DNA of 64,000 nucleotides from Schizochytrium sp. TIO01 (lineage: Eukaryota; Protista; Bigyra: Labyrinthulomycetes). The stretch spans positions 620,001 to 684,000 of the forward strand of contig SMSO01000025.1 in assembly GCA_004764695.1 (NCBI GenBank), read 5' to 3'. Shown here one piece after another: positions 20,801-48,701 of the stretch. Below the pieces are notes generated by a model that saw nothing but the letters and a program-made list of their open reading frames with translations, had not been told where the DNA came from and ran no database searches. A program made the translations under genes and the position numbers. Within the stretch, counting starts at the first letter, position 1. Each line of letters starts with the position of its first letter.

Positions 20801-22709
20801 AAAGAAGAAAGACTCCAATCTGAGCAGAGAGAGCAAACTAAAATTGTAGAGCTAGCAGAGAAAGAAGCAGTCATGTGCAAGTACGCTACAGAGCTTGAGC
20901 ATTCTTTATCTCAGCTGGAGTCTCGAAATAGGGAAATCACTGGAATTCAACAAGAACTACGTGAGGTCTGTGGAGAAAGGAATCTTTTACAGAACCAACT
21001 GCAGGAAGCACGGAGTGCTACCAACGCTGAAAGTGAAGAAAAGTTGCAATTCGAGAACACCTTACAAAGCATGACAACTGAGCTGACAGCCAAGCAGGAG
21101 CTTTTATCCGCACAGTCTGAGCAACTGAAGGATGCTCGCAAACAAATTGAGTCTCAAGTTAAAGAGCTTGCCCAAATTCAACAAAAATTGAAAAGTGTCT
21201 ATGAAGAAAATGAAGACTTACAGCAATTGCATCAAAGACATTCAAAATAACAAGAGTAGTGGCGACGAGAAAGAGCTACAGCTACAGCAGGATGTGCTTG
21301 CCCTAACGAAGGAGCTGACGGCCAAAAAAGAGTCACGGGCAGCGTTATCAAAGGAACTTGAAGAAAGCCGTACCCAGTTAGAGACTGAAAGAAACGAGGT
21401 AGCAGTGATTCGGCTCGAGCTAGAAAACACTGACGTTCAAAATAAACTTTTACAACGCCAGCTACAGGACGCACACAGTAATGTGGAAAGTGCAAATGCA
21501 AAGCAACAACAATTACAGCAGGAAATGCAGAAAGTATCAGAGGAGCTTAAGGCAAGACAAGACAGCCTTACTACGTTGTCTCAAAAGTTGGAAGTAGCTC
21601 ACACGCAAATTGTAACTCTCCAAAGCAATCTAGAGATGGTACATCAGGATCTCAAACAATCGCGTGAAGAGAATCAGGTATTGCAGGGCGCTCTTCAGGA
21701 CGAACGTGAGGCTCGCGAATCCGCTGAAAGAGCGAAATCAGCCCTTGATGAAGATCTGCGAAAGACTGAAGAGCTATCAAACATTCATGCAAAAGAGATA
21801 GGGGGTCTCAAAGCTGATATCGAACGTCTTCAAAGAGAATTATGTGCAAAGACAAACGCTAGTGAGCTTTTGAGCTCTGAGCTTGAGGGTCTACGGCAGC
21901 AATCTGCCCATTGGCGTCAGTTGCACCAGGACGACATTCGCACTTTAGAGCTGCAGATAAGTAGCATGGAAGCTGACCACACAGCACTTAGTGCTAAGCT
22001 CAAGAGGGCCTCTGAAGAGCTGGAGACATTTCAATCAAGTCAAGGCAGCCTAAACCGGGATTGGGAAAGCAAGTGTATGGAGAAAGACTCTGAGGTTGAA
22101 GAATTAGAAGAACAACTTCGTGCGCAGCAGCAGTCTTTCGAGATTGAGCGAAAAGAGCTGAACCTTGCTGTGACTACAGCACTTAGTCAACTATCAGTCC
22201 TTCAAAGCAATTTGAGCTTGCTTGAAAAGTCAAATCACTCCGTGAGTCAAGCACGAACAAGAGAGAAGGACTCTTTAGAGGGGCAGATGGATACACTTAT
22301 TCGCGATAAATCAATCCTGGAGGGCGAACTTCGCAGCAAGATAGATGAGTGTGACCGCTGGAGGTCATCGGAAATGAATGCGATCAAAGCAAATTCTCGT
22401 TTGGAAATTGAGCTGCTAACCGTGAAGGATCAAAATAACTTCCTTGAAGAAACAGAAGGTAAACTTCGTGACCAGGTTTCACAACTTAGTAAGGTCAAGC
22501 AAGAGCTGACTCAAAAGCTGTATGTATTCGAGCAACAGTCGAACCAGGAGACAAGTGCGCTAAAACGATCCTTGCAGCAACTTCAAGCGGAGGTAGATGC
22601 ACTGCGACAACAGCTTGAAAACGAAAGGATCGCGTTTGATACAATATTCAAGGCGCAATCGGAGACTTTACAGTACACGACCTTTAATCCTCACGAGACT
22701 GAAGAATAG
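17837..22709 (+). CDS. Kinesin-3 family (KIF1/KIF13/KIF14-like) motor with long coiled-coil tail; reading frame interrupted by a +1 frameshift at about 21227-21230
   Basis: Motor motifs VAVRVRPF, FTFD.CFWSFD, GQTGSGKT, LRVREHP, SSRSHAVF, DLAGSER and PYRNSALTWLLKESLGGNAKT. ORFs 17837-21250 and 21195-22709 overlap and continue the same 77-aa coiled-coil periodicity. Confidence 0.88.
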
Positions 22710-28810: not shown

Positions 28811-31285
28811 TTAAGGATTTATATTTGGGAGGCTGTGACTTCGGCGAAGGCCAGAATAGTTTCGAGTATCTTGGGAACCTGTTGTAGAAGCTATGTAACC
28901 AGTATGTTGCCACCAGCGCTCGTTAGCTCCCTCGATAGTAAGGAGTGCTCCGCTGTTAAGGATAGTATTACGTCCTACCGATGTGCCAAAATCATATTTA
29001 CCTTTTCTATTTGGCCCTTCACGCTTGCGAGCCCAAAGGTTTGCCCACCATCCTCTCTTTGATTTATATTCACTAATATGCTCTCGTAAAATGGGGACGG
29101 CACCATCAGACTTTCGCTCTTTGATCTCATAAGAGCTTGCTGGTAAGCATTTTGCGCGCCAACTAATTTGCTGAGGTGCTTCTTCTGCACGAAATAAAGC
29201 ATACTCACACATTTCGTTGTCTCCTCGCCAGTTAAGTTTCTTCTTCTGCATTGACTTACGTCTTTGAAGCAAACCATCAGATAAAGCTTCAATATTCCCA
29301 CGCCGTGCACCCGACCCAGGAAGCCATGCCACAACACTTGACCTTAATGACTGTATAGTTGGTGAGCTGAACCGTCCGCCTACCTTGTGATTAAGTTCAA
29401 TGTTTATCTTAGGCTTCTTTAAATTAAAAACGGAAGCTTCTTCAGGAGGCAAATATGTAAAGTTTTCCTGGCCATGTCTATGTTGGAGGCGTTGTTGTCC
29501 AATCTGCAGACTCATTGCAATATTTGGATCGCTATCACTTCTGCGAATTGAGTTGTTACGATGGACTTCTAAAGTGCTCTTTTGAGGTTTGTGCGGAGAA
29601 ATGTTGCCTGGTTTCTTCTGGGGAAAAGTGTTGTTGCTGCCGTAATATGGATTAGGCTGTGATTTAGAGCGGGATCGTCCAGTTTCAAAAGACGGAGTGC
29701 GATTGTCTACAAGTTGAGAAGTGACTCTGGAGTCAGGTATTGTCGAAGCACGATAGCGCCCACTATCAGAAGAATAAAAGCTATGATTTTCTCGACACAT
29801 TTGCACCTGGGTTGATTTTCCCATATACTTAGGTTGAGTACTGTATGCCTCTTCCCTTTGTTTCAAATCATCCGAAGTGGCCCGGCTGACATAACTTGAG
29901 GGGTAACTTGCTACCATAGAGCTTTGCCCGGTTGTTTCTGAAGAGTGATGGTTCAGACCTACGTTGACGCGCTGAGGGATGTAGACAAACCTACTGTTGG
30001 AGTCAATATCTACTGGATTTTGAACGTTTTCACTGGTCGAGCAGGATGAATTTAGTAAAACCCTTTGAGGCATCTCGGCATCTCTTGGAATGTGCTGTTC
30101 GCCACGATTTCCTTTGGTACTGACATTTTGGTGTTTCTTTCCAATCTCATCACTCAGATAGACATACGGATTTGGAGGCTGCATTTTATAACAAAAAGTC
30201 GGATCCGCAGCCCGGGGAAAATGAAGACTCGGGTTCTGGCTTACAGACTGAGATAACGTGGATTGAAAATACCTTGGTGAAGTACTGTACTTACTTGTCA
30301 TCTGCGATGGTGACCCAGACTTTACAGAGTTGTTAAAGTTTTGTCCCTTATGTATGAAAAAAGACGGGCTCGATTCTAACGTGTCAATATGTTGTTTTGG
30401 TTTGTAAGTGTTCTGAGACTTTCCCTGTCGTTTTGATTCCTTATTGAAAAGACTAAATGATTCTATTGGGAAATCTGTGTGTGCCTTTTCCTCGCTATGA
30501 TCTTGGTTTGGTGAAACGCGATCCAGTTCTTCTTTTTTATCATTTCTTTCTTGGTATGGATTCCAAGCAGTGTCAAGGTTGATATCTGTTACGGTCAGAA
30601 CCTTAATGTTTGAAATCTTTGCAGAACGTCTATAAGTTAAGTTTGGAGATCGTGGTCCAGCATACAACTTTGAGTATTGCCTTTCGTGACTAGAACTGTG
30701 CCTTTCACGATTTGTTGAAGACTCCAACACTACATTTTGAGGAGGCAATCTTTGAGTTTTAAGATCCTCTTGGCCTAGGCTGCTATAACATGCCAATTGT
30801 TTTGATTGATCTCCATCCTGAAATGAATGATTGTCTGTTTTTGGAATCGAAGAAGAGGTCATGTATCGGCAGCTGGTATTGTATAAGTCTGATTTCTGCT
30901 GCATTTGAGTTTTATCGCTTAATATTTGATTTTGGACGTTCTTTGTGCAGTGCAAGTCTTTGGAGACGTAAGAGACTCTATAGTCATATTTATGATTTTT
31001 GAGTGGCGCCTGAGACGGCGCAGACAGGGAAGCTTCCATATCATTTCGTTGGCATCGGCCGAAGTTAAGTTGAAGTGAGCCTGGATCTGCGAAATCAGGT
31101 TGTTCATTGAAAGAACGTCGACGTTCAGTATGTATGACGTTTGGCTCTGCTATTTGATCCAAAACAACATTCGCCTCAGTATGCTTTACGACGCCCGGGT
31201 CTTCCTTATACTCGTATCTTCGTAGAGTAATGCCGCACCCAGGTATTTGCCAGGGCTCTCGTCTCTCTTCGAATGTAAACGACAT
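28811..31285 (-). CDS. Hypothetical Ser/Gln/Pro-rich, largely disordered protein (824 aa)
   Basis: A 2.5-kb open frame is very unlikely by chance. Composition is low-complexity and no domain was recognised. Confidence 0.7.
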   Translation of the reverse strand: MSFTFEERREPWQIPGCGITLRRYEYKEDPGVVKHTEANVVLDQIAEPNVIHTERRRSFNEQPDFADPGSLQLNFGRCQRNDMEASLSAPSQAPLKNHKYDYRVSYVSKDLHCTKNVQNQILSDKTQMQQKSDLYNTSCRYMTSSSIPKTDNHSFQDGDQSKQLACYSSLGQEDLKTQRLPPQNVVLESSTNRERHSSSHERQYSKLYAGPRSPNLTYRRSAKISNIKVLTVTDINLDTAWNPYQERNDKKEELDRVSPNQDHSEEKAHTDFPIESFSLFNKESKRQGKSQNTYKPKQHIDTLESSPSFFIHKGQNFNNSVKSGSPSQMTSKYSTSPRYFQSTLSQSVSQNPSLHFPRAADPTFCYKMQPPNPYVYLSDEIGKKHQNVSTKGNRGEQHIPRDAEMPQRVLLNSSCSTSENVQNPVDIDSNSRFVYIPQRVNVGLNHHSSETTGQSSMVASYPSSYVSRATSDDLKQREEAYSTQPKYMGKSTQVQMCRENHSFYSSDSGRYRASTIPDSRVTSQLVDNRTPSFETGRSRSKSQPNPYYGSNNTFPQKKPGNISPHKPQKSTLEVHRNNSIRRSDSDPNIAMSLQIGQQRLQHRHGQENFTYLPPEEASVFNLKKPKINIELNHKVGGRFSSPTIQSLRSSVVAWLPGSGARRGNIEALSDGLLQRRKSMQKKKLNWRGDNEMCEYALFRAEEAPQQISWRAKCLPASSYEIKERKSDGAVPILREHISEYKSKRGWWANLWARKREGPNRKGKYDFGTSVGRNTILNSGALLTIEGANERWWQHTGYIASTTGSQDTRNYSGLRRSHSLPNINP

Positions 31286-33024
31286 TGACTCAAATCAGTG
31301 TGTAGCACGACAACTCACGAAGCGTGCTTCAATGCCGATTGGAAACTGACTCTCTTACCTAGGTCTGGAGACTATCTATTCAGAGGAAGATTTAAATCTT
31401 ATTATTGAAGTAGTAAATGATAATAGACATCTATTCTGCTAGTGTTGTTGAAATAGCTTTGATTACTAAAAGATACATACGTATACCCTTTGTGTAAGTG
31501 CACAGCCTCCTGACAGGTCGAGAACTTGTCGTGTACACGAGTGTTATCATCATCATGTGACACATACGCATATAGATCCGGTTCCATTTTGTATCCGTTT
31601 GGTGGAACATATGTTATTCCTATTGCAGAAGGATAAATTTAATTCATATAAATTAGCAGTAGTAAGCAGTGCTCAAATGCTCTAATGATGCGAACCCTGT
31701 GGTCAAACTTGGTTTATATGAAAGGTACTTGCCATTGAATTTGGAAATATGTGACTTGACTCATATTCTTGATGGTAGTCCAGCTTCCTTCGGAGTAACA
31801 ATCCAAAGAGTCCACTTGACACATTTGTGTCCATGAGAAGAAGTGCAATTTTCTTTTTAAAACGTTGAATCAAGAACATTTTTTTTTGTAACGGATAAAA
31901 TTAAAATCTCAAAACCTTGCCCCCAGGAATCATCTATTGCTGAAACTTAAGGCAAAGCATTCGCTTACAGAGTATTGTATTCAAGCATACACACTGTAAC
32001 AAATTTGAACCGGGTCTACATTTTATTTAACTTTTCTTTTTTTTGGGGGGGGGTGGTTCTAGTTTTATTCTTGGTGTCACCAGGGTTTTTGTTCTATTTC
32101 CAGAATTTCATTGGCCTATGCTATCGCCAGGAAACGCTTTCTTTCTAGCCCATTTTATTCCAATGGGTGCTCTGTTTCTTCTTTTGTTTCTATTTTCAGT
32201 CTTCCTATTAATCTGGCTTTGTATGAACAAATCGTTAAGTAAAACGCAGTTAGTGATATTTGGCGATTTAGCGTGGAGCGATTAGCGAGGGATGGATAAA
32301 TAAATGAAGGAAAGAATAGTTTAGGATTAACATTAAAAAACCACTGCCGAAGTCTGTGAAGTCCAAGCCTTGGAGTGAGCATGTTCTTTTCGAGATATTC
32401 TAGTAAATACACACATACTTGTAAACTTTTCCTGAGAAACTTCAATACCGCCTCAACATAAAGCGGCAGAAAATATGAATGAGTTTAGCTAGCCCCAAAG
32501 TATGTCGCTCTCGCCAAACGCTTCTCTAGATTCTAGAGTTGACATCTCTATTTTTATCTTTCTTTCAAAAGTCGTCATGTTGTGTTTTAATTAAAATAAT
32601 ATGCAGCCAAGAATCTAACCTCACCTAACCTAATCTAGCTCTCCTGTCCGACACTCTTCAGTTCGACTCTAAACATTCTGCAAATACCCAGCCCGATCCG
32701 GAACCCCAATAACATAATTAGCCTCCTCCTCTTTCTCCTGAGCTTGTCATCCTTGTCAGACTACCTCTGCACGCTCCACTACATGAGCTAACTTGCAATA
32801 GTTTTTAATCAATCTTTTAGTATGGGTACTCGTATTTGTCATGATGAAGTGATTTGAATGAGTTATCGATTTGTTGCATCACCCAAGAGCGTATAATTAT
32901 CAAAGTTATAAGAAAAGGAGAGGACAACACTAAAACCGAATAAAACCAAACAAAAGAAGATTAGTAAGTACAATTTTTTAATTTAAAATAAGAAAGAAGA
33001 ATAGGTCGGTAAATTTTGGTAAAT

Positions 33025-36000
33025 TTAGGCTGATGCAATGAGACCATGAGTTCGCAGCTTGCTCAATAAATCATTCACTTGGCTCCGTGACTCATTCAAC
33101 CAGTCCCGAAGTTTCTCACATTCATCACGCAGGGCTTGAATTTCTGATTGGCTATACGAAGCAGATATCGTCAAACCACCTATAGTTCCATCTCCAGGGT
33201 CATAGGTTGCCGAAATGTCAGTCACAGCGGTAGCTTGCGAACCAATCACCTGGTTCCCTCCAACAGATATCGTACCAACATTCGAAATAGCGGTACCGTC
33301 AAAAGAAACACTTTCAATAATTACAGTGCCGGAAGAGGAGCTTACAGTCAATGACGTTGCGCCTGTATGAGAAATTGAGGCAATGTCGTTACTAAGCGAG
33401 ACATCGCCTGTCATGCTGAGAGACACAACATCCGAAATGGCATTGCTTGTGCTAAATGAAACTCCCTGTACAACCACATCACCACCAGACGAAATGGTCA
33501 ACGCACTGCTATCTGCATGCGAAATTGTGGATGCGCCTGAAGCACCGAACGCTAGGTTTCCACCGGACGTCATATCGCCACTTGTGGTCAGCGTTGAGAC
33601 ACTCAAAGCGCCAGTACTTGTGATTGCACCTGTTTTCATGGTAACTCCTGAAACAACGACGTTGCCACCAGAAGTGATTGACAAGTCTGCATTTGCAGCG
33701 CCAGTGTGAGTAATGGCTTGAGCAGAAGATGAAGTCAATGCGATCCCTCCAGCGCTGCTGGTCAAGGTGCCTGTCATGCCGATTGTACTGGCACCGCTCA
33801 CAGCCCCTCCGTTCATTGTGACTCCATGAACAACCACATCACCACCAGACGAAATAGTCAATGCACTGCTATCTGCATGCGAAATTGTGGATGCGCCTGA
33901 CGCGCTGAACGCTAGGTTGCCACCAGACGTAATATCACCACTTGTGGTCAGTGTTGAGACACTCAGAGCGCCCGTACTTGTGATCGCACCCCCATTCATT
34001 GTAACACTATTCACAATAACGTTGCCACCAGAAGTGATTGACAAGTCTGCATTTGCAGCGCCAGTGTGAGTAATGGCTTGAGCTGAAGATGACGTCAATG
34101 CGATCCCTCCAGCGCTGCTGGTCAAGGTGCCTGTCATGCCGATTGTACTGGCACCGCTCACAGCCCCTCCGTTCATTGTGACTCCATGAACAACCACATC
34201 ACCACCAGACGAAATAGTCAATGCACTGCTATCTGCATGCGAAATTGTGGATGCGCCTGAAGCACTGAACGCTAGGTTTCCACCAGACGTAATATCACCA
34301 CTCGTGGTCAGTGTTGAGACACTCAGAGCGCCCGTGCTTGTGATCGCACCCCCATTCATTGTAACACTATTCACAATAACGTTGCCACCAGAAGTGATTG
34401 ACAAGTCTGCATTTGCAGCGCCAGTGTGAGTAATGGCTTGAGCAGAAGATGAAGTCAATGCGATCCCGCCAGCGCTGCTAGTCAAGGTGCCTGTCATGCC
34501 GATTGTACTGGCACCGCTCACAGCCCCTCCGTTCATTGTGACTCCATGAACAACCACATCACCACCAGACGAAATAGTCAATGCACTGCTATCTGCATGC
34601 GAAATTGTGGATGCGCCTGACGCGCTGAACGCTAGGTTGCCACCAGACGTAATATCACCACTTGTGGTCAGTGTTGAGACACTCAGAGCGCCCGTACTTG
34701 TGATCGCACCTCCATTCATTGTGACACTATTCACAATAACGTTGCCACCAGAAGTGATTGACAAGTCTGCATTTGCAGCGCCAGTGTGAGTAATGGCTTG
34801 AGCTGAAGATGAAGTCAATGCGATCCCTCCAGCGCTGCTGGTCAAGGTGCCTGTCATGCCGATTGTACTGGCCCCGCTCACAGCACCTGCGTTCATCGTA
34901 ACGCCATCAACAACGACGTTGCCACCAGAAGTGATTGACAAGTCTGCATTTGCAGCGCCAGTGTGAGTAATGGCTTGAGCAGAAGATGAAGTCAATGCGA
35001 TCCCTCCAGCGCTGCTGGTCAAGGTGCCTGTCATGCCAATTGTACTGGCACCGCTCACAGCCCCTCCGTTCATTGTGACTCCATGAACAACCACATCACC
35101 ACCAGACGAAATAGTCAATGCACTGCTATCTGCATGCGAAATTGTGGATGCGCCTGACGCGCTGAACGCTAGGTTGCCACCAGACGTAATATCACCACTT
35201 GTGGTCAGTGTTGAGACACTCAGAGCGCCCGTACTTGTGATCGCACCTCCGTTCATTGTAACACTATTCACAATAACGTTGCCACCAGAAGTGATTGACA
35301 AGTCTGCATTTGCAGCGCCAGTGTGAGTAATGGCTTGAGCTGAAGATGAAGTCAATGCGATCCCTCCAGCGCTGCTAGTCAAGGTGCCTGTCATGCCGAT
35401 TGTACTGACACCGCTCACAGCACCTCCGTTCATTGTGACTCCATGAACAACCACATCACCACCAGACGAAATAGTCAATGCACTGCTATCTGCATGCGAA
35501 ATTGTGGATGCGCCTGACGCGCTGAACGCTAGGTTGCCACCAGACGTAATATCACCACTTGTGGTCAGTGTTGAGACACTCAGAGCGCCCGTACTTGTGA
35601 TCGCACCTCCATTCATTGTAACACTATTCACAATAACGTTGCCACCAGAAGTGATTGACAAGTCTGCATTTGCAGCGCCAGTGTGAGTAATGGCTTGAGC
35701 AGAAGATGACGTCAATGCGATCCCTCCAGCGCTGCTAGTCAAGGTGCCTGTCATGCCGATGGTACTGGCACCGCTCACAGCACCTCCGTTCATTGTGACT
35801 CCATGAACAACCACATCACCACCAGACGAAATAGTCAATGCACTGCTATCTGCATGCGAAATTGTGGATGCGCCTGACGCGCTGAACGCTAGGTTGCCAC
35901 CAGACGTAATATCACCACTTGTGGTCAGTGTTGAGACACTCAGAGCGCCCGTACTTGTGATCGCACCTCCATTCATTGTAACACTATTCACAATAACGTT

Positions 36001-39000
36001 GCCACCAGAAGTGATTGACAAGTCTGCATTTGCAGCGCCAGTGTGAGTAATGGCTTGAGCTGAAGATGACGTCAATGCAATCCCTCCAGCGCTGCTGGTC
36101 AAGGTGCCTGTCATGCCGATTGTACTGGCACCGCTCACAGCACCTGCGTTCATCGTAACGCCATCGACAACGACGTTGCCACCAGAAGTGATTGACAAGT
36201 CTGCATTTGCAGCGCCAGTGTGAGTAATGGCTTGAGCAGAAGATGAAGTCAATGCGATCCCTCCAGCGCTGCTAGTCAAGGTGCCTGTCATGCCAATTGT
36301 ACTGGCACCGCTCACAGCCCCTCCGTTCATTGTGACTCCATGAACAACCACATCACCACCAGACGAAATAGTCAATGCACTGCTATCTGCATGCGAAATT
36401 GTGGATGCGCCTGACGCGCTGAACGCTAGGTTGCCACCAGACGTAATATCACCACTTGTGGTCAGTGTTGAGACACTCAGAGCGCCCGTACTTGTGATCG
36501 CACCTCCGTTCATTGTAACACTATTCACAATAACGTTGCCACCAGAAGTGATTGACAAGTCTGCATTTGCAGCGCCAGTGTGAGTAATGGCTTGAGCTGA
36601 AGATGAAGTCAATGCGATCCCTCCAGCGCTGCTGGTCAAGGTGCCTGTCATGCCGATTGTACTGACACCGCTCACAGCACCTCCGTTCATTGTGACTCCA
36701 TGAACAACCACATCACCACCAGACGAAATAGTCAATGCACTGCTATCTGCATGCGAAATTGTGGATGCGCCTGACGCGCTGAACGCTAGGTTGCCACCAG
36801 ACGTAATATCACCACTTGTGGTCAGTGTTGAGACACTCAGAGCGCCCGTACTTGTGATCGCACCTCCATTCATTGTAACACTATTCACAATAACGTTGCC
36901 ACCAGAAGTGATTGACAAGTCTGCATTTGCAGCGCCAGTGTGAGTAATGGCTTGAGCAGAAGATGACGTCAATGCGATCCCGCCAGCGCTGCTGGTCAAG
37001 GTGCCTGTCATGCCGATTGTACTGGCACCGCTCACAGCACCTCCGTTCATTGTGACTCCATGAACAACCACATCACCACCAGACGAAATAGTCAATGCAC
37101 TGCTATCTGCATGCGAAATTGTGGATGCGCCTGACGCGCTGAACGCTAGGTTGCCACCAGACGTAATATCACCACTTGTGGTCAGTGCTGAGACACTCAG
37201 AGCGCCCGTACTTGTGATCGCACCTCCATTCATTGTAACACTATTCACAATAACGTTGCCACCAGAAGTGATTGACAAGTCTGCATTTGCAGCGCCAGTG
37301 TGAGTAATGGCTTGAGCTGAAGATGACGTCAATGCAATCCCTCCAGCGCTGCTGGTCAAGGTGCCTGTCATGCCGATTGTACTGGCCCCGCTCACAGCAC
37401 CTGCGTTCATCGTAACGCCATCAACAACGACGTTGCCACCAGAAGTGATTGACAAGTCTGCATTTGCAGCGCCAGTGTGAGTAATGGCTTGTGCAGAAGA
37501 TGACGTCAATGCGATCCCTCCAGCGCTGCTAGTCAAGGTGCCTGTCATGCCGATGGTACTGGCACCGCTCACAGCACCTCCGTTCATTGTGACTCCATGA
37601 ACAACCACATCACCACCAGACGAAATAGTCAATGCACTGCTATCTGCATGCGAAATTGTGGATGCGCCTGACGCGCTGAACGCTAGGTTGCCACCAGACG
37701 TAATATCACCACTTGTGGTCAGTGTTGAGACACTCAGAGCGCCCGTACTTGTGATCGCACCCCCATTCATTGTAACACTATTCACAATAACGTTGCCACC
37801 AGAAGTGATTGACAAGTCTGCATTTGCAGCGCCAGTGTGAGTAATGGCTTGAGCTGAAGATGACGTCAATGCAATCCCTCCAGCGCTACTGGTCAAGGTG
37901 CCTGTCATGCCGATTGTACTGGCACCGCTCACAGCACCTCCGTTCATTGTGACTCCATGAACAACCACATCACCACCAGACGAAATAGTCAATGCACTGC
38001 TATCTGCATGCGAAATTGTAGATGCGCCTGAAGCGCTGAACGCTAGGTTTCCACCAGACGTAATATCACCACTTGTGATCAGTGTTGAGACACTCAGAGC
38101 GCCCGTACTTGTAATCGCACCTCCGTTCATTGTAACACTATTCACAATAACGTTGCCACCAGAAGTGATTGACAAGTCTGCATTTGCAGCGCCAGTGTGA
38201 GTAATGGCTTGAGCAGAAGATGAAGTCAATGCGATCCCTCCAGCGCTACTGGTCAAGGTGCCTGTCATGCCGATTGTACTGGCCCCGCTCACAGCACCAG
38301 CGTTCATCGTAACGCCATCAACAACGACGTTGCCACCAGAAGTGATTGACAAGTCTGCATTTGCAGCGCCAGTGTGAGTAATGGCTTGTGCAGAAGATGA
38401 CGTCAATGCGATCCCTCCAGCGCTGCTAGTCAAGGTGCCTGTCATGCCGATGGTACTGGCACCGCTCACAGCACCTCCGTTCATTGTGACTCCATGAACA
38501 ACCACATCACCACCAGACGAAATAGTCAATGCACTGCTATCTGCATGCGAAATTGTGGATGCGCCTGACGCGCTGAACGCTAGGTTGCCACCAGACGTAA
38601 TATCACCACTTGTGGTCAGTGTTGAGACACTCAGAGCGCCCGTACTTGTGATCGCACCCCCATTCATTGTAACACTATTCACAATAACGTTGCCACCAGA
38701 AGTGATTGACAAGTCTGCATTTGCAGCGCCAGTGTGAGTAATGGCTTGAGCTGAAGATGACGTCAATGCAATCCCTCCAGCGCTACTGGTCAAGGTGCCT
38801 GTCATGCCGATTGTACTGGCACCGCTCACAGCACCTCCGTTCATTGTGACTCCATGAACAACCACATCACCACCAGACGAAATAGTCAATGCACTGCTAT
38901 CTGCATGCGAAATTGTAGATGCGCCTGAAGCGCTGAACGCTAGGTTTCCACCAGACGTAATATCACCACTTGTGATCAGTGTTGAGACACTCAGAGCGCC

Positions 39001-42000
39001 CGTACTTGTAATCGCACCTCCGTTCATTGTAACACTATTTACAATAACGTTGCCACCAGAAGTGATTGACAAGTCTGCATTTGCAGCGCCAGTGTGAGTA
39101 ATGGCTTGAGCAGAAGATGAAGTCAATGCGATCCCTCCAGCGCTACTGGTCAAGGTGCCTGTCATGCCGATTGTACTGGCCCCGCTCACAGCACCAGCGT
39201 TCATCGTAACGCCATCAACAACGACGTTGCCACCAGAAGTGATTGACAAGTCTGCATTTGCAGCGCCAGTGTGAGTAATGGCTTGAGCAGAAGATGACGT
39301 CAATGCGATCCCTCCAGCGCTGCTAGTCAAGGTGCCTGTCATGCCGATGGTACTGGCACCGCTCACAGCACCTCCGTTCATTGTGACTCCATGAACAACC
39401 ACATCACCACCAGACGAAATAGTCAATGCACTGCTATCTGCATGCGAAATTGTGGATGCGCCTAACGCGCTGAACGCTAGGTTGCCACCAGATGTAATAT
39501 CACCACTTGTGGTCAGTGTTGAGACACTCAGAGCGCCCGTACTTGTGATCGCACCTCCATTCATTGTAACACTATTCACAATAACGTTGCCACCAGAAGT
39601 GATTGACAAGTCTGCATTTGCAGCGCCAGTGTGAGTAATGGCTTGAGCTGAAGATGACGTCAATGCAATCCCTCCAGCGCTACTGGTCAAGGTGCCTGTC
39701 ATGCCGATTGTACTGGCACCGCTCACAGCACCTCCGTTCATTGTGACTCCATGAACAACCACATCACCACCAGACGAAATAGTCAATGCACTGCTATCTG
39801 CATGCGAAATTGTAGATGCGCCTGAAGCGCTGAACGCTAGGTTTCCACCAGACGTAATATCACCACTTGTGGTCAGTGTTGAGACACTCAGAGCGCCCGT
39901 ACTTGTAATCGCACCTCCGTTCATTGTAACACTATTCACAATAACGTTGCCACCAGAAGTGATTGACAAGTCTGCATTTGCAGCGCCAGTGTGAGTAATG
40001 GCTTGAGCAGAAGATGAAGTCAATGCGATCCCTCCAGCGCTGCTGGTCAAGGTGCCTGTCATGCCGATTGTACTGGCCCCGCTCACAGCACCTGCGTTCA
40101 TCGTAACGCCATCGACAACGACGTTGCCACCAGAAGTGATTGACAAGTCTGCATTTGCAGCACCAGTGTGAGTAATGGCTTGAGCAGAAGATGAAGTCAA
40201 TGCAATCCCTCCAGCGCTGCTAGTCAAGGTGCCTGTCATGCCGATTGTACTGGCACCGCTCACAGCACCTCCGTTCATTGTGACTCCATGAACAACCACA
40301 TCACCACCAGACGAAATAGTCAATGCACTGCTATCTGCATGCGAAATTGTGGATGCGCCTGACGCGCTGAACGCTAGGTTGCCACCAGACGTAATATCAC
40401 CACTTGTGGTCAGTGTTGAGACACTCAGAGCGCCCGTACTTGTGATCGCACCTCCATTCATTGTAACACTATTCACAATAACGTTGCCACCAGAAGTGAT
40501 TGACAAGTCTGCATTTGCAGCGCCAGTGTGAGTAATGGCTTGAGCTGAAGATGACGTCAATGCGATCCCTCCAGCGCTACTGGTCAAGGTGCCTGTCATG
40601 CCGATTGTACTGGCCCCGCTCACAGCACCTGCGTTCATCGTAACGCCATCGACAACGACGTTGCCACCAGAAGTGATTGACAAGTCTGCATTTGCAGCAC
40701 CAGTGTGAGAGATACTTTGCGACAAACTAGAAGTAAGGAAGAGGCTTCCTGCCGTGCTAATATCGTCTGTTGCTGTAATGGTACCTGAAGTAGATATGGC
40801 ACCTGCATTGAAAGTGACTGTCTCAATAATCACATTTTGGGCATCCGCACTAATGACAACGTTTCCCGATGTAGACAAGATGCTAAGATCTGCTCCGGTG
40901 TTGCCAGTATGAGTAATGCTTTGTGCTGATGAAGAAGTCAGCAGAATACTGCCAGCTGAGTTGGTAAGATCACCGGCCATGGTGATGTCGTTCACATCAG
41001 TCATGTCTTGAGTTTGCAATGTAATGCCTTCAACAATGACTACACCACTGGTCGACGACATAGTCAGAGACGTGGCGCCACTGTGCGTAATGGCTACAGT
41101 ATCACCGGTCATAAGGATGCTCCCTGCAGTGCTAATATCGTCTGTTGCTGTAATGGTACCTGAAGTAGATATGGCACCTGCATTGAAAGTGACTGTCTCA
41201 ATAATCACATTTTGGGCATCCGCACTAATGACAACGTTTCCCGATGTAGACAAGATGCTAAGATCTGCTCCGGTGTTGCCAGTATGAGTAATGCTTTGTG
41301 CTGATGGAGAAGTTAGCAGAATACTGCCAGCTGAGTTGGTGAGATCACCGTCCATGGTGATGTCTGTGGCGGCGCTTATGGCACCTGCATTGAAAGTGAC
41401 TGTCTCAACAATCACATTTTGGGCATCCGCACTAATGACAACGTTTCCTGAGGTAGACGAGATGGTATAGTCAGCTCCATCAGCGCCAACATGCGTGAAT
41501 GTCTGAGCTAAAGTAGAGTAGACTTCAATGTTGCTATCCTTGAAACGTACGCCATCCACATCAACGTTGCCATTTGTAGACAAGATGTTAAGATCTGCTC
41601 CGGTGTTGCCAGTATGGGTAATGCTTTGTGCTGATGGAGAAGTTAGCAGAATACTGCCAGCTGAGTTGGTGAGATCACCGTCCATGGTGATGTCTGTGGC
41701 GGCGCTTATGGCACCTGCATTGAAAGTGACTGTCTCAACAATCACATTTTGGGCATTCGCACTAATGACAACGTTTCCTGAGGTAGACGAGATGGTATAG
41801 TCAGCTCCATCAGCGCCAACATGCGTGAATGTCTGAGCTAAAGTAGAGTAGACTTCAATGTTGCTATCCTTGAAACGTACGCCATCCACATCAACGTTGC
41901 CATTTGTAGACAAGATGCTAAGATCTGCTCCGGTGTTGCCAGTATGGGTAATGCTTTGTGCTGATGGAGAAGTTAGCAGAATACTGCCAGCTGAGTTGGT

Positions 42001-45000
42001 GAGATCACCGTCCATGGTGATGTCTGTGGCGGCGCTTATGGCACCTGCATTGAAAGTGACTGTCTCAACAATCACATTTTGGGCATCCGCACTAATGACA
42101 ACGTTTCCTGAGGTAGACGAGATGGTATAGTCAGCTCCATCAGCGCCAACATGCGTGAATGTCTGAGCTAAAGTAGAGTAGACTTCAATGTTGCTATCCT
42201 TGAAACGTACGCCATCCACATCAACGTTGCCATTTGTAGACAAGATGCTAAGATCTGCTCCGGTGTTGCCAGTATGGGTAATGCTTTGTGCTGATGGAGA
42301 AGTTAGCAGAATACTGCCAGCTGAGTTGGTGAGATCACCGTCCATGGTGATGTCTGTGGCGGCGCTTATGGCACCTGCATTGAAAGTGACTGTCTCAACA
42401 ATCACATTTTGGGCATCCGCACTAATGACAACGTTTCCTGAGGTAGACGAGATGGTATAGTCAGCTCCATCAGCGCCAACATGCGTGAATGTCTGAGCTA
42501 AAGTAGAGTAGACTTCAATGTTGCTATCCTTGAAACGTACGCCATCCACATCAACGTTGCCATTTGTAGACAAGATGCTAAGATCTGCTCCGGTGTTGCC
42601 AGTATGGGTAATGCTTTGTGCTGATGGAGAAGTTAGCAGAATACTGCCAGCTGAGTTGGTAAGATCACCGGCCATGGTGATGTCGTTCACATCAGTCATG
42701 TCTTGAGTTTGCAATGTAATGCCTTCAACAATGACTACACCACTGGTCGACGACATAGTCAGAGACGTGGCGCCACTGTGCGTAATGGCTACAGTATCAC
42801 CGGTCATAAGGATGCTCCCTGCAGTGCTAATATCGTCTGTTGCTGTAATGGTACCTGAAGTAGATATGGCACCTGCATTGAAAGTGACTGTCTCAATAAT
42901 CACATTTTGGGCATCCGCACTAATGACAACGTTTCCCGATGTAGACAAGATGCTAAGATCTGCTCCGGTGTTGCCAGTATGAGTAATGCTTTGTGCTGAT
43001 GGAGAAGTTAGCAGAATACTGCCAGCTGAGTTGGTGAGATCACCGTCCATGGTGATGTCGTTCACATCAGTCATGTCTTGAGTTTGCAATGTAATGCCTT
43101 CAACAATGACTACACCACTGGTCGACGACATAGTCAGAGACGTGGCGCCACTGTGCGTAATGGCTACAGTATCACCGGTCATAAGGATGCTCCCTGCAGT
43201 ACTAATATCGTCTGTAGCTGTAATGGTACCTGAAGTAGATATGGCACCTGCATTGAAAGTGACTGTCTCAATAATCACATTTTGGGCATCCGCACTAATG
43301 ACAACGTTTCCCGATGTAGACAAGATGCTAAGATCTGCTCCGGTGTTGCCAGTATGAGTAATGCTTTGTGCTGATGGAGAAGTTAGCAGAATACTGCCAG
43401 CTGAGTTGGTGAGATCACCGTCCATGGTGATGTCTGTGGCGGCGCTTATGGCACCTGCATTGAAAGTGACTGTCTCAACAATCACATTTTGGGCATCCGC
43501 ACTAATGACAACGTTTCCTGAGGTAGACGAGATGGTATAGTCAGCTCCATCAGCGCCAACATGCGTGAATGTCTGAGCTAAAGTAGAGTAGACTTCAATG
43601 TTGCTATCCTTGAAACGTACGCCATCCACATCAACGTTGCCATTTGTAGACAAGATGCTAAGATCTGCTCCGGTGTTGCCAGTATGGGTAATGCTTTGTG
43701 CTGATGGAGAAGTTAGCAGAATACTGCCAGCTGAGTTGGTAAGATCACCGGCCATGGTGATGTCGTTCACATCAGTCATGTCTTGAGTTTGCAATGTAAT
43801 GCCTTCAACAATGACTACACCACTGGTCGACGACATAGTCAGAGACGTGGCGCCACTGTGCGTAATGGCTACAGTATCACCGGTCATAAGGATGCTCCCT
43901 GCAGTGCTAATATCGTCTGTTGCTGTAATGGTACCTGAAGTAGATATGGCACCTGCATTGAAAGTGACTGTCTCAATAATCACATTTTGGGCATCCGCAC
44001 TAATGACAACGTTTCCCGATGTAGACAAGATGCTAAGATCTGCTCCGGTGTTGCCAGTATGAGTAATGCTTTGTGCTGATGGAGAAGTTAGCAGAATACT
44101 GCCAGCTGAGTTGGTGAGATCACCGTCCATGGTGATGTCGTTCACATCAGTCATGTCTTGAGTTTGCAATGTAATGCCTTCAACAATGACTACACCACTG
44201 GTCGACGACATAGTCAGAGACGTGGCGCCACTGTGCGTAATGGCTACAGTATCACCGGTCATAAGGATGCTCCCTGCAGTACTAATATCGTCTGTAGCTG
44301 TAATGGTACCTGAAGTAGATATGGCACCTGCATTGAAAGTGACTGTCTCAATAATCACATTTTGGGCATCCGCACTAATGACAACGTTTCCCGATGTAGA
44401 CAAGATGCTAAGATCTGCTCCGGTGTTGCCAGTATGAGTAATGCTTTGTGCTGATGGAGAAGTTAGCAGAATACTGCCAGCTGAGTTGGTGAGATCACCG
44501 TCCATGGTGATGTCTGTGGCGGCGCTTATGGCACCTGCATTGAAAGTGACTGTCTCAACAATCACATTTTGGGCATCCGCACTAATGACAACGTTTCCTG
44601 AGGTAGACGAGATGGTATAGTCAGCTCCATCAGCGCCAACATGCGTGAATGTCTGAGCTAAAGTAGAGTAGACTTCAATGTTGCTATCCTTGAAACGTAC
44701 GCCATCCACATCAACGTTGCCATTTGTAGACAAGATGTTAAGATCTGCTCCGGTGTTGCCAGTATGGGTAATGCTTTGTGCTGATGGAGAAGTTAGCAGA
44801 ATACTGCCAGCTGAGTTGGTGAGATCACCGTCCATGGTGATGTCTGTGGCGGCGCTTATGGCACCTGCATTGAAAGTGACTGTCTCAACAATCACATTTT
44901 GGGCATTCGCACTAATGACAACGTTTCCTGAGGTAGACGAGATGGTATAGTCAGCTCCATCAGCGCCAACATGCGTGAATGTCTGAGCTAAAGTAGAGTA

Positions 45001-48000
45001 GACTTCAATGTTGCTATCCTTGAAACGTACGCCATCCACATCAACGTTGCCATTTGTAGACAAGATGCTAAGATCTGCTCCGGTGTTGCCAGTATGGGTA
45101 ATGCTTTGTGCTGATGGAGAAGTTAGCAGAATACTGCCAGCTGAGTTGGTGAGATCACCGTCCATGGTGATGTCTGTGGCGGCGCTTATGGCACCTGCAT
45201 TGAAAGTGACTGTCTCAACAATCACATTTTGGGCATCCGCACTAATGACAACGTTTCCTGAGGTAGACGAGATGGTATAGTCAGCTCCATCAGCGCCAAC
45301 ATGCGTGAATGTCTGAGCTAAAGTAGAGTAGACTTCAATGTTGCTATCCTTGAAACGTACGCCATCCACATCAACGTTGCCATTTGTAGACAAGATGCTA
45401 AGATCTGCTCCGGTGTTGCCAGTATGAGTAATGCTTTGGGTATTGGATGAAGAAAAGCTGATACTTCCTGTAGAGATGGTAAGGTCGCCGGTCATATCTA
45501 TTGTGGTAATATCAGACATAGCTTGATTATTAACAGTAACTCCATCAAGGATAAGGTCTCCCCCGGAGGTAATTGAAAATGCGCTATTGTCAGAATGATC
45601 GATATTTTGGGTTCCTGATGCAGACATAAGAATATCTCCTGTTTGAATTGAGAGATCGCCAGTTCCATCAAGTGTAAAAAAAACTGTATCTGATGATTGA
45701 GGTGTTGCAGAATACACGGTGTCAGAAGCTTCATCTGTTGCAATGGTCCAAGTTGCTCCTGTTATGTATCCTGTTGAAGCTGAGAATTGTACATAAAGCC
45801 CATCAGAAAGGAGCAGAGGAGCGCTATATGCAGAGCTGATAGAAACCCCACTTGTATACGATCCCGAGCCTTTTCTCCATTGAAAAGTGTCTCCTGCCGT
45901 TACTTCAACATAGAAGATTTCACTAGTCGAATCAGTGTAGGTTCCACTAGAAGTAATTGTTTTGCCGGGGATGTGTGTTTCGCCTACTCCGGCTGTAATG
46001 AGATTAAATGCAGCATTGGCAGCTCGCGCTGCTTTAACATCAAAAACGGTATCTGCGAAAGATGTGCTTGTTGCAACTGCTGTTAATGCAGTAGAACTAG
46101 TACTTTCTTGCTTTACTACTCCACCTCCAGTTTCAACAGTTAAGCCATCTTTAATATTGGCGCCTCCTGTGACATCAGCGCCTCCTGCAGCAACATATAG
46201 GCCTCCGGCAGTAATATCAATTCCTCCGGCATCGACAAGAATACCACCTTGCTGAACATAGATGCCGTTATCTTCTACAGTAAGCAAGTCTCCAAAGTAT
46301 GACTTCATTGAGACGCCCAGTCCACCCTGTATCATGACATCCGCAGATGTAGAGGAGGTTGCATCATTTGTACTAGTAGCAGTGATTGTACCACCAAAAT
46401 AAGAATCTAGTGCCACACTGAGGCCGCCATTAGTGCGAAGTGAGCCTGAGCCTACGCTAGTTGATGTGGTAGTACCTTCTGCAACTATGTTTGTTCCAGC
46501 ATATATTGCTTTTGTGACAGCAAGTCCACCTGCATGCATCACAGACCCAGCTGTGGAACTTGTTGCGTCAGTCGTGTCTTCTGTGACAACAATTCCTCCT
46601 ACATATAGTTGCTTTGCGACTGCCATACCGCCAGCTGTTTGAAAAGAGCCGTATGTAGAACTTGTTGCATCAGTGGTTGCTCGCACAAACGTGTCACCGT
46701 TGCCAAATACAGTAAATACCCTGGTACTGCCTGACGCTTGTAAATCAAGTAAACTAAACGATCTTGCTCCAGTCTCTTGAGCACGAATAACAGTCACAAT
46801 ATCTGTAAAGGGCGTACCAAGGGCTGCAACTTCCAAGACAGGTTCAAGAAGGTTTGTTGAAAATATGTCAGCCCCATCTTCGTCAACTATAAGCCCACCC
46901 TCGATGATTTCTGCACCACCATCAGCAACAATGAGACCTCCAGAGTAAATGTAGACCTGACCATCTCCACGTACGTCAAACACAGGTACATCATTTGCAA
47001 GTGCTTCGATAAACTTATAGTCACTGGCAGCAGCCTTGGCTGAGGTGAGTTTAAGGACCGACCCGACAAATGCAAGTCCTGTGTTCTCAATGGTAAAGGT
47101 CGACTGATAGTCATTTGTTACAACTTCGTAAGTCTTGGTATCGCAATTTGAACCACCATATCCAACAAAGCATGCACATGTTCCTGTTGACGCATCACAC
47201 GAGCCTCGACCAGAACACTGCCGAAACTCTTTCAAATAGGTGTTTGTGTCGATGGCGAGGACACACGTTGGCGTTGTTCCACTGGAAATGCCGCTGGTGA
47301 TACAAGTGAATTCGTCAACATCCGGATTACCTGCATGCCAGAAAAGGTTGTTAAAATTACCAGATTCCCATGCAGTAAAAGTGATTGTATACTCAGCACC
47401 GGAATTTGCATCTACAGAGCCCTGAGTGACAGTAACTGATCCAATTGAGGGATGCGCTTCGAGAGCTGTTTTCATGGAAGCTGCATCTAGAGCTGATGCA
47501 TCAGCATCAAATGTAATTGAGTCACCCATAAATCGCAGTTCAAATTCGCCTGCTAGCGTCCCTGACGATGCTCCTGTTGTTAAAGTTATAGTGTAGTCGC
47601 GTTGATACTCATCTACAATGGTAGCTGTTGCTGATGTATAGCTAGATCCTCCGTTGGTAATAGTAATTGATGCAATTGCTCCGTTCGAATCGACTACAGG
47701 AGTGGCGGTGGCACCTGATCCATCACCGGTGATTGTAATCACGGGATTGTTGTAAGCCTCTCCTCCTGTTGTTACAGCTATTGCCGTAATTACGCCGCTG
47801 GAAAGAGTTACCGCACCTAGCTCAGCATCAAATCCTGGTACAGTGTCTGGGTCATCACCCATTGGGCATACAGCGTATTCACAGTTAGGCCCAGTAAAGC
47901 CACGATCACAGTTGCATACATAGTTCTTGCTACTCTCCCAGTTTGTATAAGCGGTTCCCACACCATCCTGATCACTATCTGATCCATACTCAAGGGCAAT

Positions 48001-48701
48001 TTCTGCAATGCTTAAGCAACGTCCCTTACCGCTGCAATCATTATTACAGCGAACACGCTGACACGCATCTCCTGTGAATCCAGTGAAACAATCACATTCA
48101 CCCCGTTCTCGATCACATGTACCAGCGTTAGAACATTCAGCACTACCCACGTGTGCTGTCAAAGCGTCGTAAGGCTTTCCGCTCCACCTGGGGCCAGTGG
48201 GACATGATCCTGTGTCAATGAGGTAAAAAAAAAAATCATAAATAAGATGGAACGTTAGGTTTTGGTGTTTACAGATGCAATTTTGCCCAGAATGACAATT
48301 CGTGGCATCCTTCAAAAAGGAGCGATTCTGCATTTATCTCTTTCGTGTGATTAGAAAACCTCCTTTCTCTTGATATATGGGCTAGTAGATTTCTTAAGCT
48401 AACGCAACTTACGTAATGAACAGTCCGGGGCGCCGTCCCAGCCAGTAAAGCAGGTACACGTATCATCTGGGTTACAAGTACCCCGTTTATTACAGTTATT
48501 TGGACAATGGGCTTCTGCACTTCGAAGGCCCAGCACAATGATTATGAATAGGACAAGGTCCCTACATGTCCCGCGTTTCCTCGAAGGTTTGGAAGGCCTT
48601 ATTTTCAAGGGCTTTAAGGAGCTGAAATGCAAGGTTGAAGGATCCTTGATGAGACCCTGCCCTTGCCGATGTGGCTCCTTTGAGAAGGGTCCCGCTGCCA
48701 T
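33025..48701 (-). CDS. Giant secreted or anchored fibre-like protein (about 5157 aa; exon 1 48701-48413, exon 2 48209-33025): mastigoneme-type EGF head, beta-repeat shaft, phage tail-needle-like C-terminus
   Basis: ORF 48399-48701 carries a hydrophobic segment LVLFIIIVLGLRSAEA and the EGF HCPNNCNKRGTC. It splices in phase to the 5102-codon ORF, giving DCSLR-SCPTG. Further EGF/tenascin-like repeats and a CPMGDDP motif follow, then long Ser/Thr/Gly/Ala tandem arrays, ending SYSQSEIQAL...LRTHGLI. Confidence 0.9.
33470..40710 (-). repeat. Coding tandem array B: 17 long (360 bp, 120 aa) and 7 short (177 bp, 59 aa) units
   Basis: Shadow-ORF starts recur at 360, 537 and 897 bp spacing. Units read GGNVVVDGVTMNAG..., GGNVIVNSVTMNGG... 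and GGDVVVHGVTMNGG.... Confidence 0.95.
40745..45438 (-). repeat. Coding tandem array A: 330-bp (110 aa) and 375-bp (125 aa) units with 1080-bp and 3150-bp higher-order duplications
   Basis: Near-identical copies. Shadow-ORF starts recur at 330, 375 and 1080 bp spacing (e.g. 42518/43598/44678). Shared variants occur 3150 bp apart. Confidence 0.95.
48210..48412 (-). other. Spliceosomal GT-AG intron (203 bp, phase 1) of the giant fibre gene
   Basis: Donor C|GTAAGT at 48412, CTAAC branch-like motif near 48255, T-rich tract, and acceptor ACACAG|GA at 48210. Splicing restores a CGA (Arg) codon and the frame. Confidence 0.85.

Follow-up and report, generated by a model that had tools for sequence, protein, structure and literature searches.

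Why should a gene of the labyrinthulomycete Schizochytrium sp. TIO01 end in a domain that resembles the tip of the tail needle of bacteriophage P22? The question arises in a 64,000-nucleotide (nt) stretch of contig SMSO01000025.1 (assembly GCA_004764695.1, positions 620,001–684,000 of the forward strand), the whole of which is called the window here. A very long minus-strand open frame in it closes with a peptide that an earlier note, made from the letters alone, had likened to the P22 needle protein gp26 and read as a trimerisation/tip domain acquired horizontally by an intron-containing eukaryotic gene. The explanation we favour as a whole, with a probability of about 0.72, is that the gene encodes a giant secreted extracellular fibre protein bearing a phage-derived C-terminal trimerisation/capping module. 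The frame and its terminal domain lie at:

33025..48333, minus strand: open frame of the fibre gene, 5102 codons
33025..33027, minus strand: stop codon
33028..33348, minus strand: phage needle-tip / tail-fibre-end domain (profile envelope of ~107 residues; core as first reported, 33028–33282)

The domain is organized into an extended N-terminal half (VGGNQVIG..., DPGDGTIGGLTIS) and a 34-residue amphipathic helix ending LRTHGLIASA. The peptide quoted in the earlier note is the exact C-terminus of the frame, the gp26 sequence it quoted agrees with the deposited one, and HMMER alignment places the SVGGxxVxG, YxQSEIQA and LRxHGLI blocks in the same order in both proteins. Profile, PDB and phage searches with the last ~85 residues returned gp26-type matches, and the resemblance proved significant and collinear to the C-terminal end by PHROG, PDB and hhalign comparison alike. 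In PHROG, the last 85 residues matched phrog_1219 'tail needle protein' with E 1.1e-7 (profile positions 159–232 of 233). A phmmer search of all PDB sequences placed the gp26 entries 3c9i/2poh/4lin/4zkp on top (E 3.7e-3 to 4.4e-3), aligning residues 18–97 of the protein's last 100 with gp26 residues 159–232 of 233; the next, unrelated PDB match (E 0.33) was ~100-fold weaker. By tblastn, 107 of 50,697 phage records matched, all at tail needle genes of P22-like/Lederbergvirus or APSE phages (33–37% identity), and a 7-sequence profile of the protein's own subfamily aligned with a P22 gp26 at 95% hhalign probability (E 3.7e-8). The match region ends 3 residues ahead of the stop codon, and its sole internal gap, within the terminal helix, is exactly 7 residues, or one heptad. 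Neither Pfam nor NCBIfam holds a model for this domain.

The counterpart in the phage is the gp26 tip, residues 141–233 (P22, PDB 2POH and 3C9I; HK620-type needle, 5BU5/5BU8), with which the fibre protein is collinear over the last ~75–90 residues, sharing VGGxxVxG, YxQSE(I/V)QA, LRxHGLI and the terminal heptad helix. In the crystal structure the gp26 tip is a homotrimer made up of a triple beta-helix and an inverted coiled coil. Identity is only 31–37%, and the fibre-protein helix is one heptad longer. Beyond the tip the two proteins part company: the fibre protein has neither the N-terminal gp10-binding plug nor the long α-helical coiled-coil shaft of gp26, and carries beta-type repeats upstream; gp26 is encoded in a phage tail cluster, whereas the fibre protein is encoded by a eukaryotic nuclear gene.

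A likeness of this kind could be convergent, with a generic amphipathic C-terminal helix scoring through its coiled-coil composition. The helix alone is indeed weakly specific, because a broad family profile (A2) matches unrelated coiled coils (E 0.0025–0.003) about as well as gp26 (E 0.007–0.03). The predicted structure adds no match of its own: AlphaFold2 modelling of the last 100 residues as a monomer (66-sequence alignment; predicted local distance difference test, pLDDT, 86.8) gave an extended half with two short strands and one helix at residues 60–93, whose a/d pattern is unbroken (I-L-C-L-L-S-V-L-L-H) and closes on an invariant His in the final 'd' position; a Foldseek search with this model gave no significant match (PDB 2poh_A at rank 7, E 6; best BFVD match E 0.41). 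We treated that null as uninformative because the model is a single chain of a probable trimer. Convergence is nevertheless very improbable, since the match extends over the non-helical half (VGGxxVxG and the YxQSEIQA entry) as well as the terminal HGLI, runs collinear to the last residue with a gap of one heptad, ranks gp26 first in a single-sequence search of PDB, ~100-fold ahead of the next match, and is upheld by the PHROG and hhalign scores, while intermediate phage fibre sequences link the fibre-protein domain to gp26.

Those intermediates belong to a large family. A profile search over 1.84 billion representative proteins (E ≤ 1e-3) found the C-terminal module in 371 protein clusters, and in 166 of 199 local family matches the module ends ≤5 residues from the C-terminus. 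Type I, which includes the window's fibre protein, follows the pattern DPGDGTI ... ALRDECEKLRD ... LRTHGLIAT/S; type II consists of short proteins with a GGNGLIAD end; type III is very numerous and ends in GLIKGSA, and its subfamily represented by P0093 gave no tblastn match among cultured phages. Conservation is strong in the extended half (DPGDGTI..LT.S) and strongest in the heptad helix. That LRxHGLI ends recur in other phage fibres, as the earlier note had stated, is borne out by many dense phage-like metagenome contigs with fibres ending ...LNDLLAKLRTHGLIAT; on an IMG/VR contig, a 100-residue member lies immediately after a J-like central tail fibre gene.

The closest phage relative, P0011 (471 residues; contig SDBT01004138.1, locus L006, a dense phage-like contig of 31% GC), matches the module with 66% identity over 76 residues (E 5e-34) and carries it at the same C-terminal position, behind a phage tail fibre or tailspike body (phrog_16641, E 1e-19) unrelated to the repeats of the fibre protein. 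In tblastn searches P0011 matched a tail fiber of Stenotrophomonas phage DLP_6 (6e-27), Flavobacterium phage 11b (8e-27) and also Streptomyces phages, cultured phages that are without the C-terminal module. These comparisons indicate that the nearest phage relatives are uncultured tail fibres and not P22, which is a distant member of the family. Leavitt et al. (2013) reported the P22-type tip to be without database matches outside P22-like phages (PMC3741392); the searches here show it as a single branch within a large family whose members form the C-terminal ends of fibres in uncultured phages. A homology search with the C-terminal region, limited to proteins 2,800–8,900 residues long, gave no match.

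Across 185,579 prokaryote species genomes, a pattern scan turned up a single confirmed relative of the full-length type-I domain, on a 2-kb contig of a metagenome-assembled genome (MAG). This contig (L004; Woesearchaeota MAG contig CAYRCZ010000030.1, 2171 nt, 60% GC) holds a fibre-like frame ending ...LNDLLAKLRTHGLIAT and is possibly viral or mis-binned. Five metagenome proteins (P0041, P0007, P0021, P0029 and P0049) carry the helix-entry motif (EVEALRDKCEELGDD-type) in 3–5 tandem copies, so the module can lengthen through internal duplication. Another metagenome protein, P0031 (179 residues), joins an N-terminus read by eye as a bacterial methyltransferase to a C-terminal domain of the window's type and groups with the eukaryotic cluster; it is probably a mis-assembly.

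At its other end, the fibre gene begins with a module of an altogether different kind:

48414..48701, minus strand: exon 1, coding part as modelled, from the ATG (48701–48699) through a hydrophobic signal-like segment to AEA and the first EGF-like repeat
48210..48412, minus strand: intron of 203 nt, GT-AG, phase 1 (GT 48412–48411, AG 48211–48210)
47137..48209, minus strand: remainder of the tubular-mastigoneme-protein-type module (EGF array, middle region, closing EGF), matched to PDB 9ufe OCM5
47389..47811, minus strand: Gly-rich 'ITITGDGSGATA / ITNGGSSYTS' repeats in the middle of the N-terminal module, matched to PHROG phrog_460

The intron splits an Arg codon, with C as the last base of exon 1 (48413) and GA opening exon 2, and the frame is kept. 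The two exons were searched separately, without joining. The start of exon 2 (~360 residues) matched OCM5 (368 residues) of the tubular mastigoneme structure 9ufe with E 4.9e-24, query residues 2–120 aligning with 57–181 and query residues 330–357 with the closing EGF at 336–363, and five more 9ufe chains matched with E 1e-16 to 9e-23. Residues 53–93 of exon 1 matched residues 6–46 of chain 9ufe_DA, the end of the signal peptide and the first EGF (E 2.4e-8). The match is thus collinear across the intron, because residues 6–46 fit exon 1 and those from 56–57 onward fit exon 2. In a homologous protein of Hondaea fermentalgiana (P0166), the predicted exon junction is spanned without a break: DCSLRSCPTGPRW (DCSLR-SCPTGPRW). 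The earlier note's view of the host gene as eukaryotic and intron-containing is upheld by this splice, by the Hondaea homologue across it and by the mastigoneme collinearity of both exons.

Signal end, EGF array, middle region and closing EGF are all collinear with OCM5, as they are in the tubular mastigoneme proteins (OCM/Mas; 9ufe OCM5, OCM3 and OCM6), and the N-terminal module is a complete tubular-mastigoneme-protein module. Known mastigoneme proteins end near the closing EGF (~200–750 residues; OCM5, 368), whereas the fibre protein continues for ~4,700 more. The Gly-rich repeats within the module matched phrog_460, annotated as head closure Hc2 (E 4.8e-8, profile positions 224–336 of 385), and may be a second repeat type of phage-like character within the gene. 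An AG at 48563–48562, just ahead of the hydrophobic segment, is a possible acceptor for an additional upstream exon.

The closest relative over the first 1000 residues of exon 2 is P0166, at 67% identity over 98% of the query; an Aphanomyces invadans protein followed at 30% identity over 54%, and the oomycete EGF proteins share the N-terminal part only. P0166 is annotated 'Tenascin, partial' and is a partial model of 1121 residues whose broken end shows the same repeat type; P0166 is probably orthologous to the fibre protein, Hondaea being a related thraustochytrid. Its name reflects the EGF repeats. Tenascins combine an EGF array with FN3 and fibrinogen domains, and teneurins have a YD-shell/Tox-GHH architecture. 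Pfam found EGF-type matches only in the fibre protein, EGF_Teneurin and EGF_2 above cut-off and EGF_TEN at 45.8 bits, under its cut-off of 65, with no further tenascin or teneurin domain; the tenascin identity was therefore rejected.

Between the two ends lie about 4,600–4,700 residues after the closing EGF, arranged as a non-repetitive base followed by two tandem arrays:

45439..47136, minus strand: non-repetitive fibre base, within the 1000-residue query that matches P0166
41245..45438, minus strand: tandem array B, period 330/375 nt, ~12 copies (Tandem Repeats Finder, 87% matches), ITHTG-type units
33460..40709, minus strand: tandem array A, period 177/360 nt, ~40 units of ~59–60 residues (Tandem Repeats Finder)

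Units of the ITH(T/A/S)G type number 69 between open-frame residues 968 and 4987, and the composition of the fibre is dominated by Ser (17%), Thr (15%), Gly (14%) and Ala (12%). Base and repeat units had no PDB match, and their PHROG matches were to low-complexity sequence only. The tandem repeats may adopt a beta-type fold: for the last 360 residues AlphaFold2 predicted short beta strands only, with low confidence (pLDDT 56). No Cys occurs between residues 397 and 5072. C5072 (33115–33117), the only Cys in the ~4,700-residue extension, sits at a heptad 'a' position of the terminal helix within the near-invariant ECEKLRD motif, where relatives have Val, Ala or Thr.

N-glycosylation sequons are almost absent from the fibre. 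Residues 401–5102 (33028–47130) include 245 Asn and 31% Ser+Thr, and contain one N-x-S/T sequon (N5080, in the terminal helix) against 75 ± 7 in shuffled sequences; Ser or Thr stands at +2 in 1 of 42 distinct Asn contexts. Such scarcity is consistent with a secreted fibre under selection to avoid N-glycosylation, or with a beta-helix periodicity, and the near-absence of sequons is in keeping with passage through the secretory pathway. On the opposite, plus strand, a series of identical 60-codon GTG frames runs antisense to the repeat array at 33887–36046; these are by-products of the tandem repeats and not genes.

A gene with such dissimilar ends might be a chimera of the assembly, or a eukaryotic gene to which contaminating phage sequence has become attached. 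Its 11 kb of nearly identical tandem repeats are the kind of sequence that is easily mis-assembled, and the Hondaea homologue, itself annotated as partial, stops short within its repeats. The chance that the join is artificial is nonetheless close to negligible. A single unbroken frame leads from the EGF module to the tip, and the last repeat unit runs straight into the domain, a junction found again in L005, P0017, P0018 and P0026. Independent proteins hold both ends: P0014, a EukProt genome protein of 1884 residues, and P0158, of 805 residues, each combine an OCM5-like N-terminus (E 5.6e-32 and 2.8e-45, respectively) with a phage-type C-terminal domain, so that the chimera which the earlier note had named as its own refutation was not borne out. 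Locus L005 has repeats of the same type and a 67% identical C-terminus, with an N-terminus that runs off the contig, and adjoins a MYST acetyltransferase and RNA polymerase I A49; on the 102-kb contig of L009, a gene with EGF-type cysteines and a phage-type C-terminus neighbours THOC2 and a WD40 protein. Further related sequences carry the label 'merc' with ERR run numbers, which from the label alone we take to denote a marine eukaryote transcript catalogue. Other eukaryotic contigs and proteins repeat the three-part design, which rules out an assembly chimera; the fusion of mastigoneme module, repeats and phage-type tip is a conserved eukaryotic family. In literature searches, no report of a fusion of mastigoneme module and phage tip was found.

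The surroundings agree. GC content at third codon positions in the domain is 0.374, host-like and inside the 0.35–0.49 range of the neighbouring genes; the flank downstream of the fibre gene is eukaryote-like and not phage; and the neighbours in the window are two kinesins, a DEAD-box helicase, a TPR protein and a pseudouridine synthase. With its in-frame GT-AG intron, these neighbours and its closest relative in Hondaea fermentalgiana, the fibre gene is eukaryotic.

How the module came to be shared between phages and stramenopiles was examined with a domain tree of 94 rows and 101 columns, which is unrooted and weakly resolved. In it, gp26 forms a clade with 100/100 support on a long branch within the type-I group, and 25 of the 29 eukaryotic rows fall into one group (83/88). 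The phage protein P0011 also lies inside that group, together with L005 and P0051 (99/82). The phylogeny thus places the eukaryotic sequences mostly together, with P0011 among them and the root not fixed; the monophyly of the eukaryotic sequences is neither rejected nor demonstrated (approximately unbiased test, p 0.162). Of the horizontal acquisition proposed earlier, the gp26-type homology in a eukaryotic gene stands, and the phage-to-eukaryote direction is not proven by an unrooted tree.

The reverse direction, in which a module native to stramenopiles was captured by phages, would suit the placement of P0011 within a mostly eukaryotic cluster, the lack of a root and the near-absence of full-length type-I relatives from prokaryote reference genomes. 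We regard it as rather improbable, in view of the distribution of the family: to judge from the 150 listed, most of the 371 clusters look phage and are more diverse than the eukaryotic set; their diversity takes in the types ending GGNGLIAD and LIKGSA, the short forms, and the gp26 proteins of APSE and enterobacterial phages; and the eukaryotic members are a minority that cluster together. Transfer from phage to eukaryote followed by diversification is favoured because the phage members are diverse and abundant; this direction is more parsimonious, not proven. The placement of P0011 then calls for at least one further exchange, or for a surviving donor lineage. The recipient appears, from its N-terminal module, to have been a mastigoneme-family gene of a thraustochytrid-like stramenopile. 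In the scheme we propose, a fibre gene of a phage (or prophage) would have donated the module to a stramenopile lineage, where it would have been fused behind the resident mastigoneme-family gene and later have diversified into several eukaryotic subfamilies. Swapping of C-terminal modules is a known habit of phage fibres (PMC3741392). A structural domain of phages would thereby have been put to new use in an extracellular fibre of eukaryotes. The module occurs in marine stramenopiles, in nuclear genes with introns, is conserved in several eukaryotic subfamilies and is up to 66% identical to that of a living phage lineage.

What the module does for the fibre is suggested by its role in P22, where the tip (gp26 codons 141–233) stabilises the trimer (PMC3741392). 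By analogy, we infer that the module trimerises, sets register and caps the fibre. The terminal amphipathic helix and the preceding extended segment would come together in a parallel homotrimer of the kind seen in phage fibres; the trimer would set the register of the three chains, nucleate or cap the folding of the long fibre and form its free distal tip; and at the N-terminus the mastigoneme-type module would hold the fibre to an assembly of EGF proteins outside the cell. The foldon of T4 fibritin is alike in the proposed role, being a small C-terminal module that nucleates and stabilises a long homotrimeric fibre. It is a beta-hairpin propeller without sequence relationship to the module, which is helix-based.

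The needle tip of P22 is the first part of the phage to touch the host outer membrane, and the main job of the fibre-protein tip could likewise be contact, adhesive or sensing, with prey bacteria, surfaces or partner cells, in place of trimerisation. If the N-terminal module is the anchor, the domain does occupy the protein's free end, and its extended half is strongly conserved. The speed at which DNA is delivered changes when the gp26 tip is modified (PMC3741392), which would also suit a contact function. The same study found that the tip does not set host range and can be replaced by foldon or by unrelated knobs with plaque-forming phage still made, DNA delivery being slower with foldon (PMC3741392), which argues against it. 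No ligand-binding feature was detected in the domain, and the heptad helix is its best-conserved part. A contact tip seems unlikely as the main function, and we prefer the trimerisation and capping role.

Several points weigh against the favoured explanation as a whole. The broad profile scores unrelated coiled coils no worse than gp26, and Foldseek found nothing significant for the monomer model. P0011 is nested among eukaryotic sequences in a short, poorly resolved and unrooted tree, and eukaryote monophyly is left undecided by the topology test. Mis-assembly may have altered the number of repeat copies. The fibre gene also has an uncertain 5′ end, and the true start may sit elsewhere, because the 45 residues modelled ahead of the hydrophobic segment (48562–48701) are without counterpart in mastigoneme proteins.

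The N-terminal module also raises a more specific proposal. The family might supply the filaments, lateral or terminal, of the tripartite tubular mastigoneme: an OCM5-like subunit would sit in the hair shaft, the ~4,700-residue extension would form the filament, and the phage-derived trimerisation tip would keep it together at its distal end. This we hold to be doubtful at present; if it were true, a defining stramenopile structure would be partly built from a phage tail-fibre module. The fibre protein is a candidate for the filament proteins of stramenopile flagellar hairs or for another thraustochytrid surface structure, for which the small C-terminal domain offers a testable handle (antibody or tag), and the module may serve as a compact natural trimerisation tag.

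Rfam and tRNA scans of the whole window gave no matches. Directly downstream of the fibre gene, a minus-strand frame of 824 codons, rich in Ser, Asn and Gln (28811–31285), had no Pfam match. On the plus strand, a kinesin frame (17837–21250) overlaps the next long frame (21195–22709) by 56 nt in a different reading frame; the two frames (17837–22709) may belong to a single gene that contains an intron or is frameshifted. In the intergenic sequence 1 kb downstream of the fibre-gene stop there is a homopolymer run (32036–32056), made up of a stretch of T and then about nine G.

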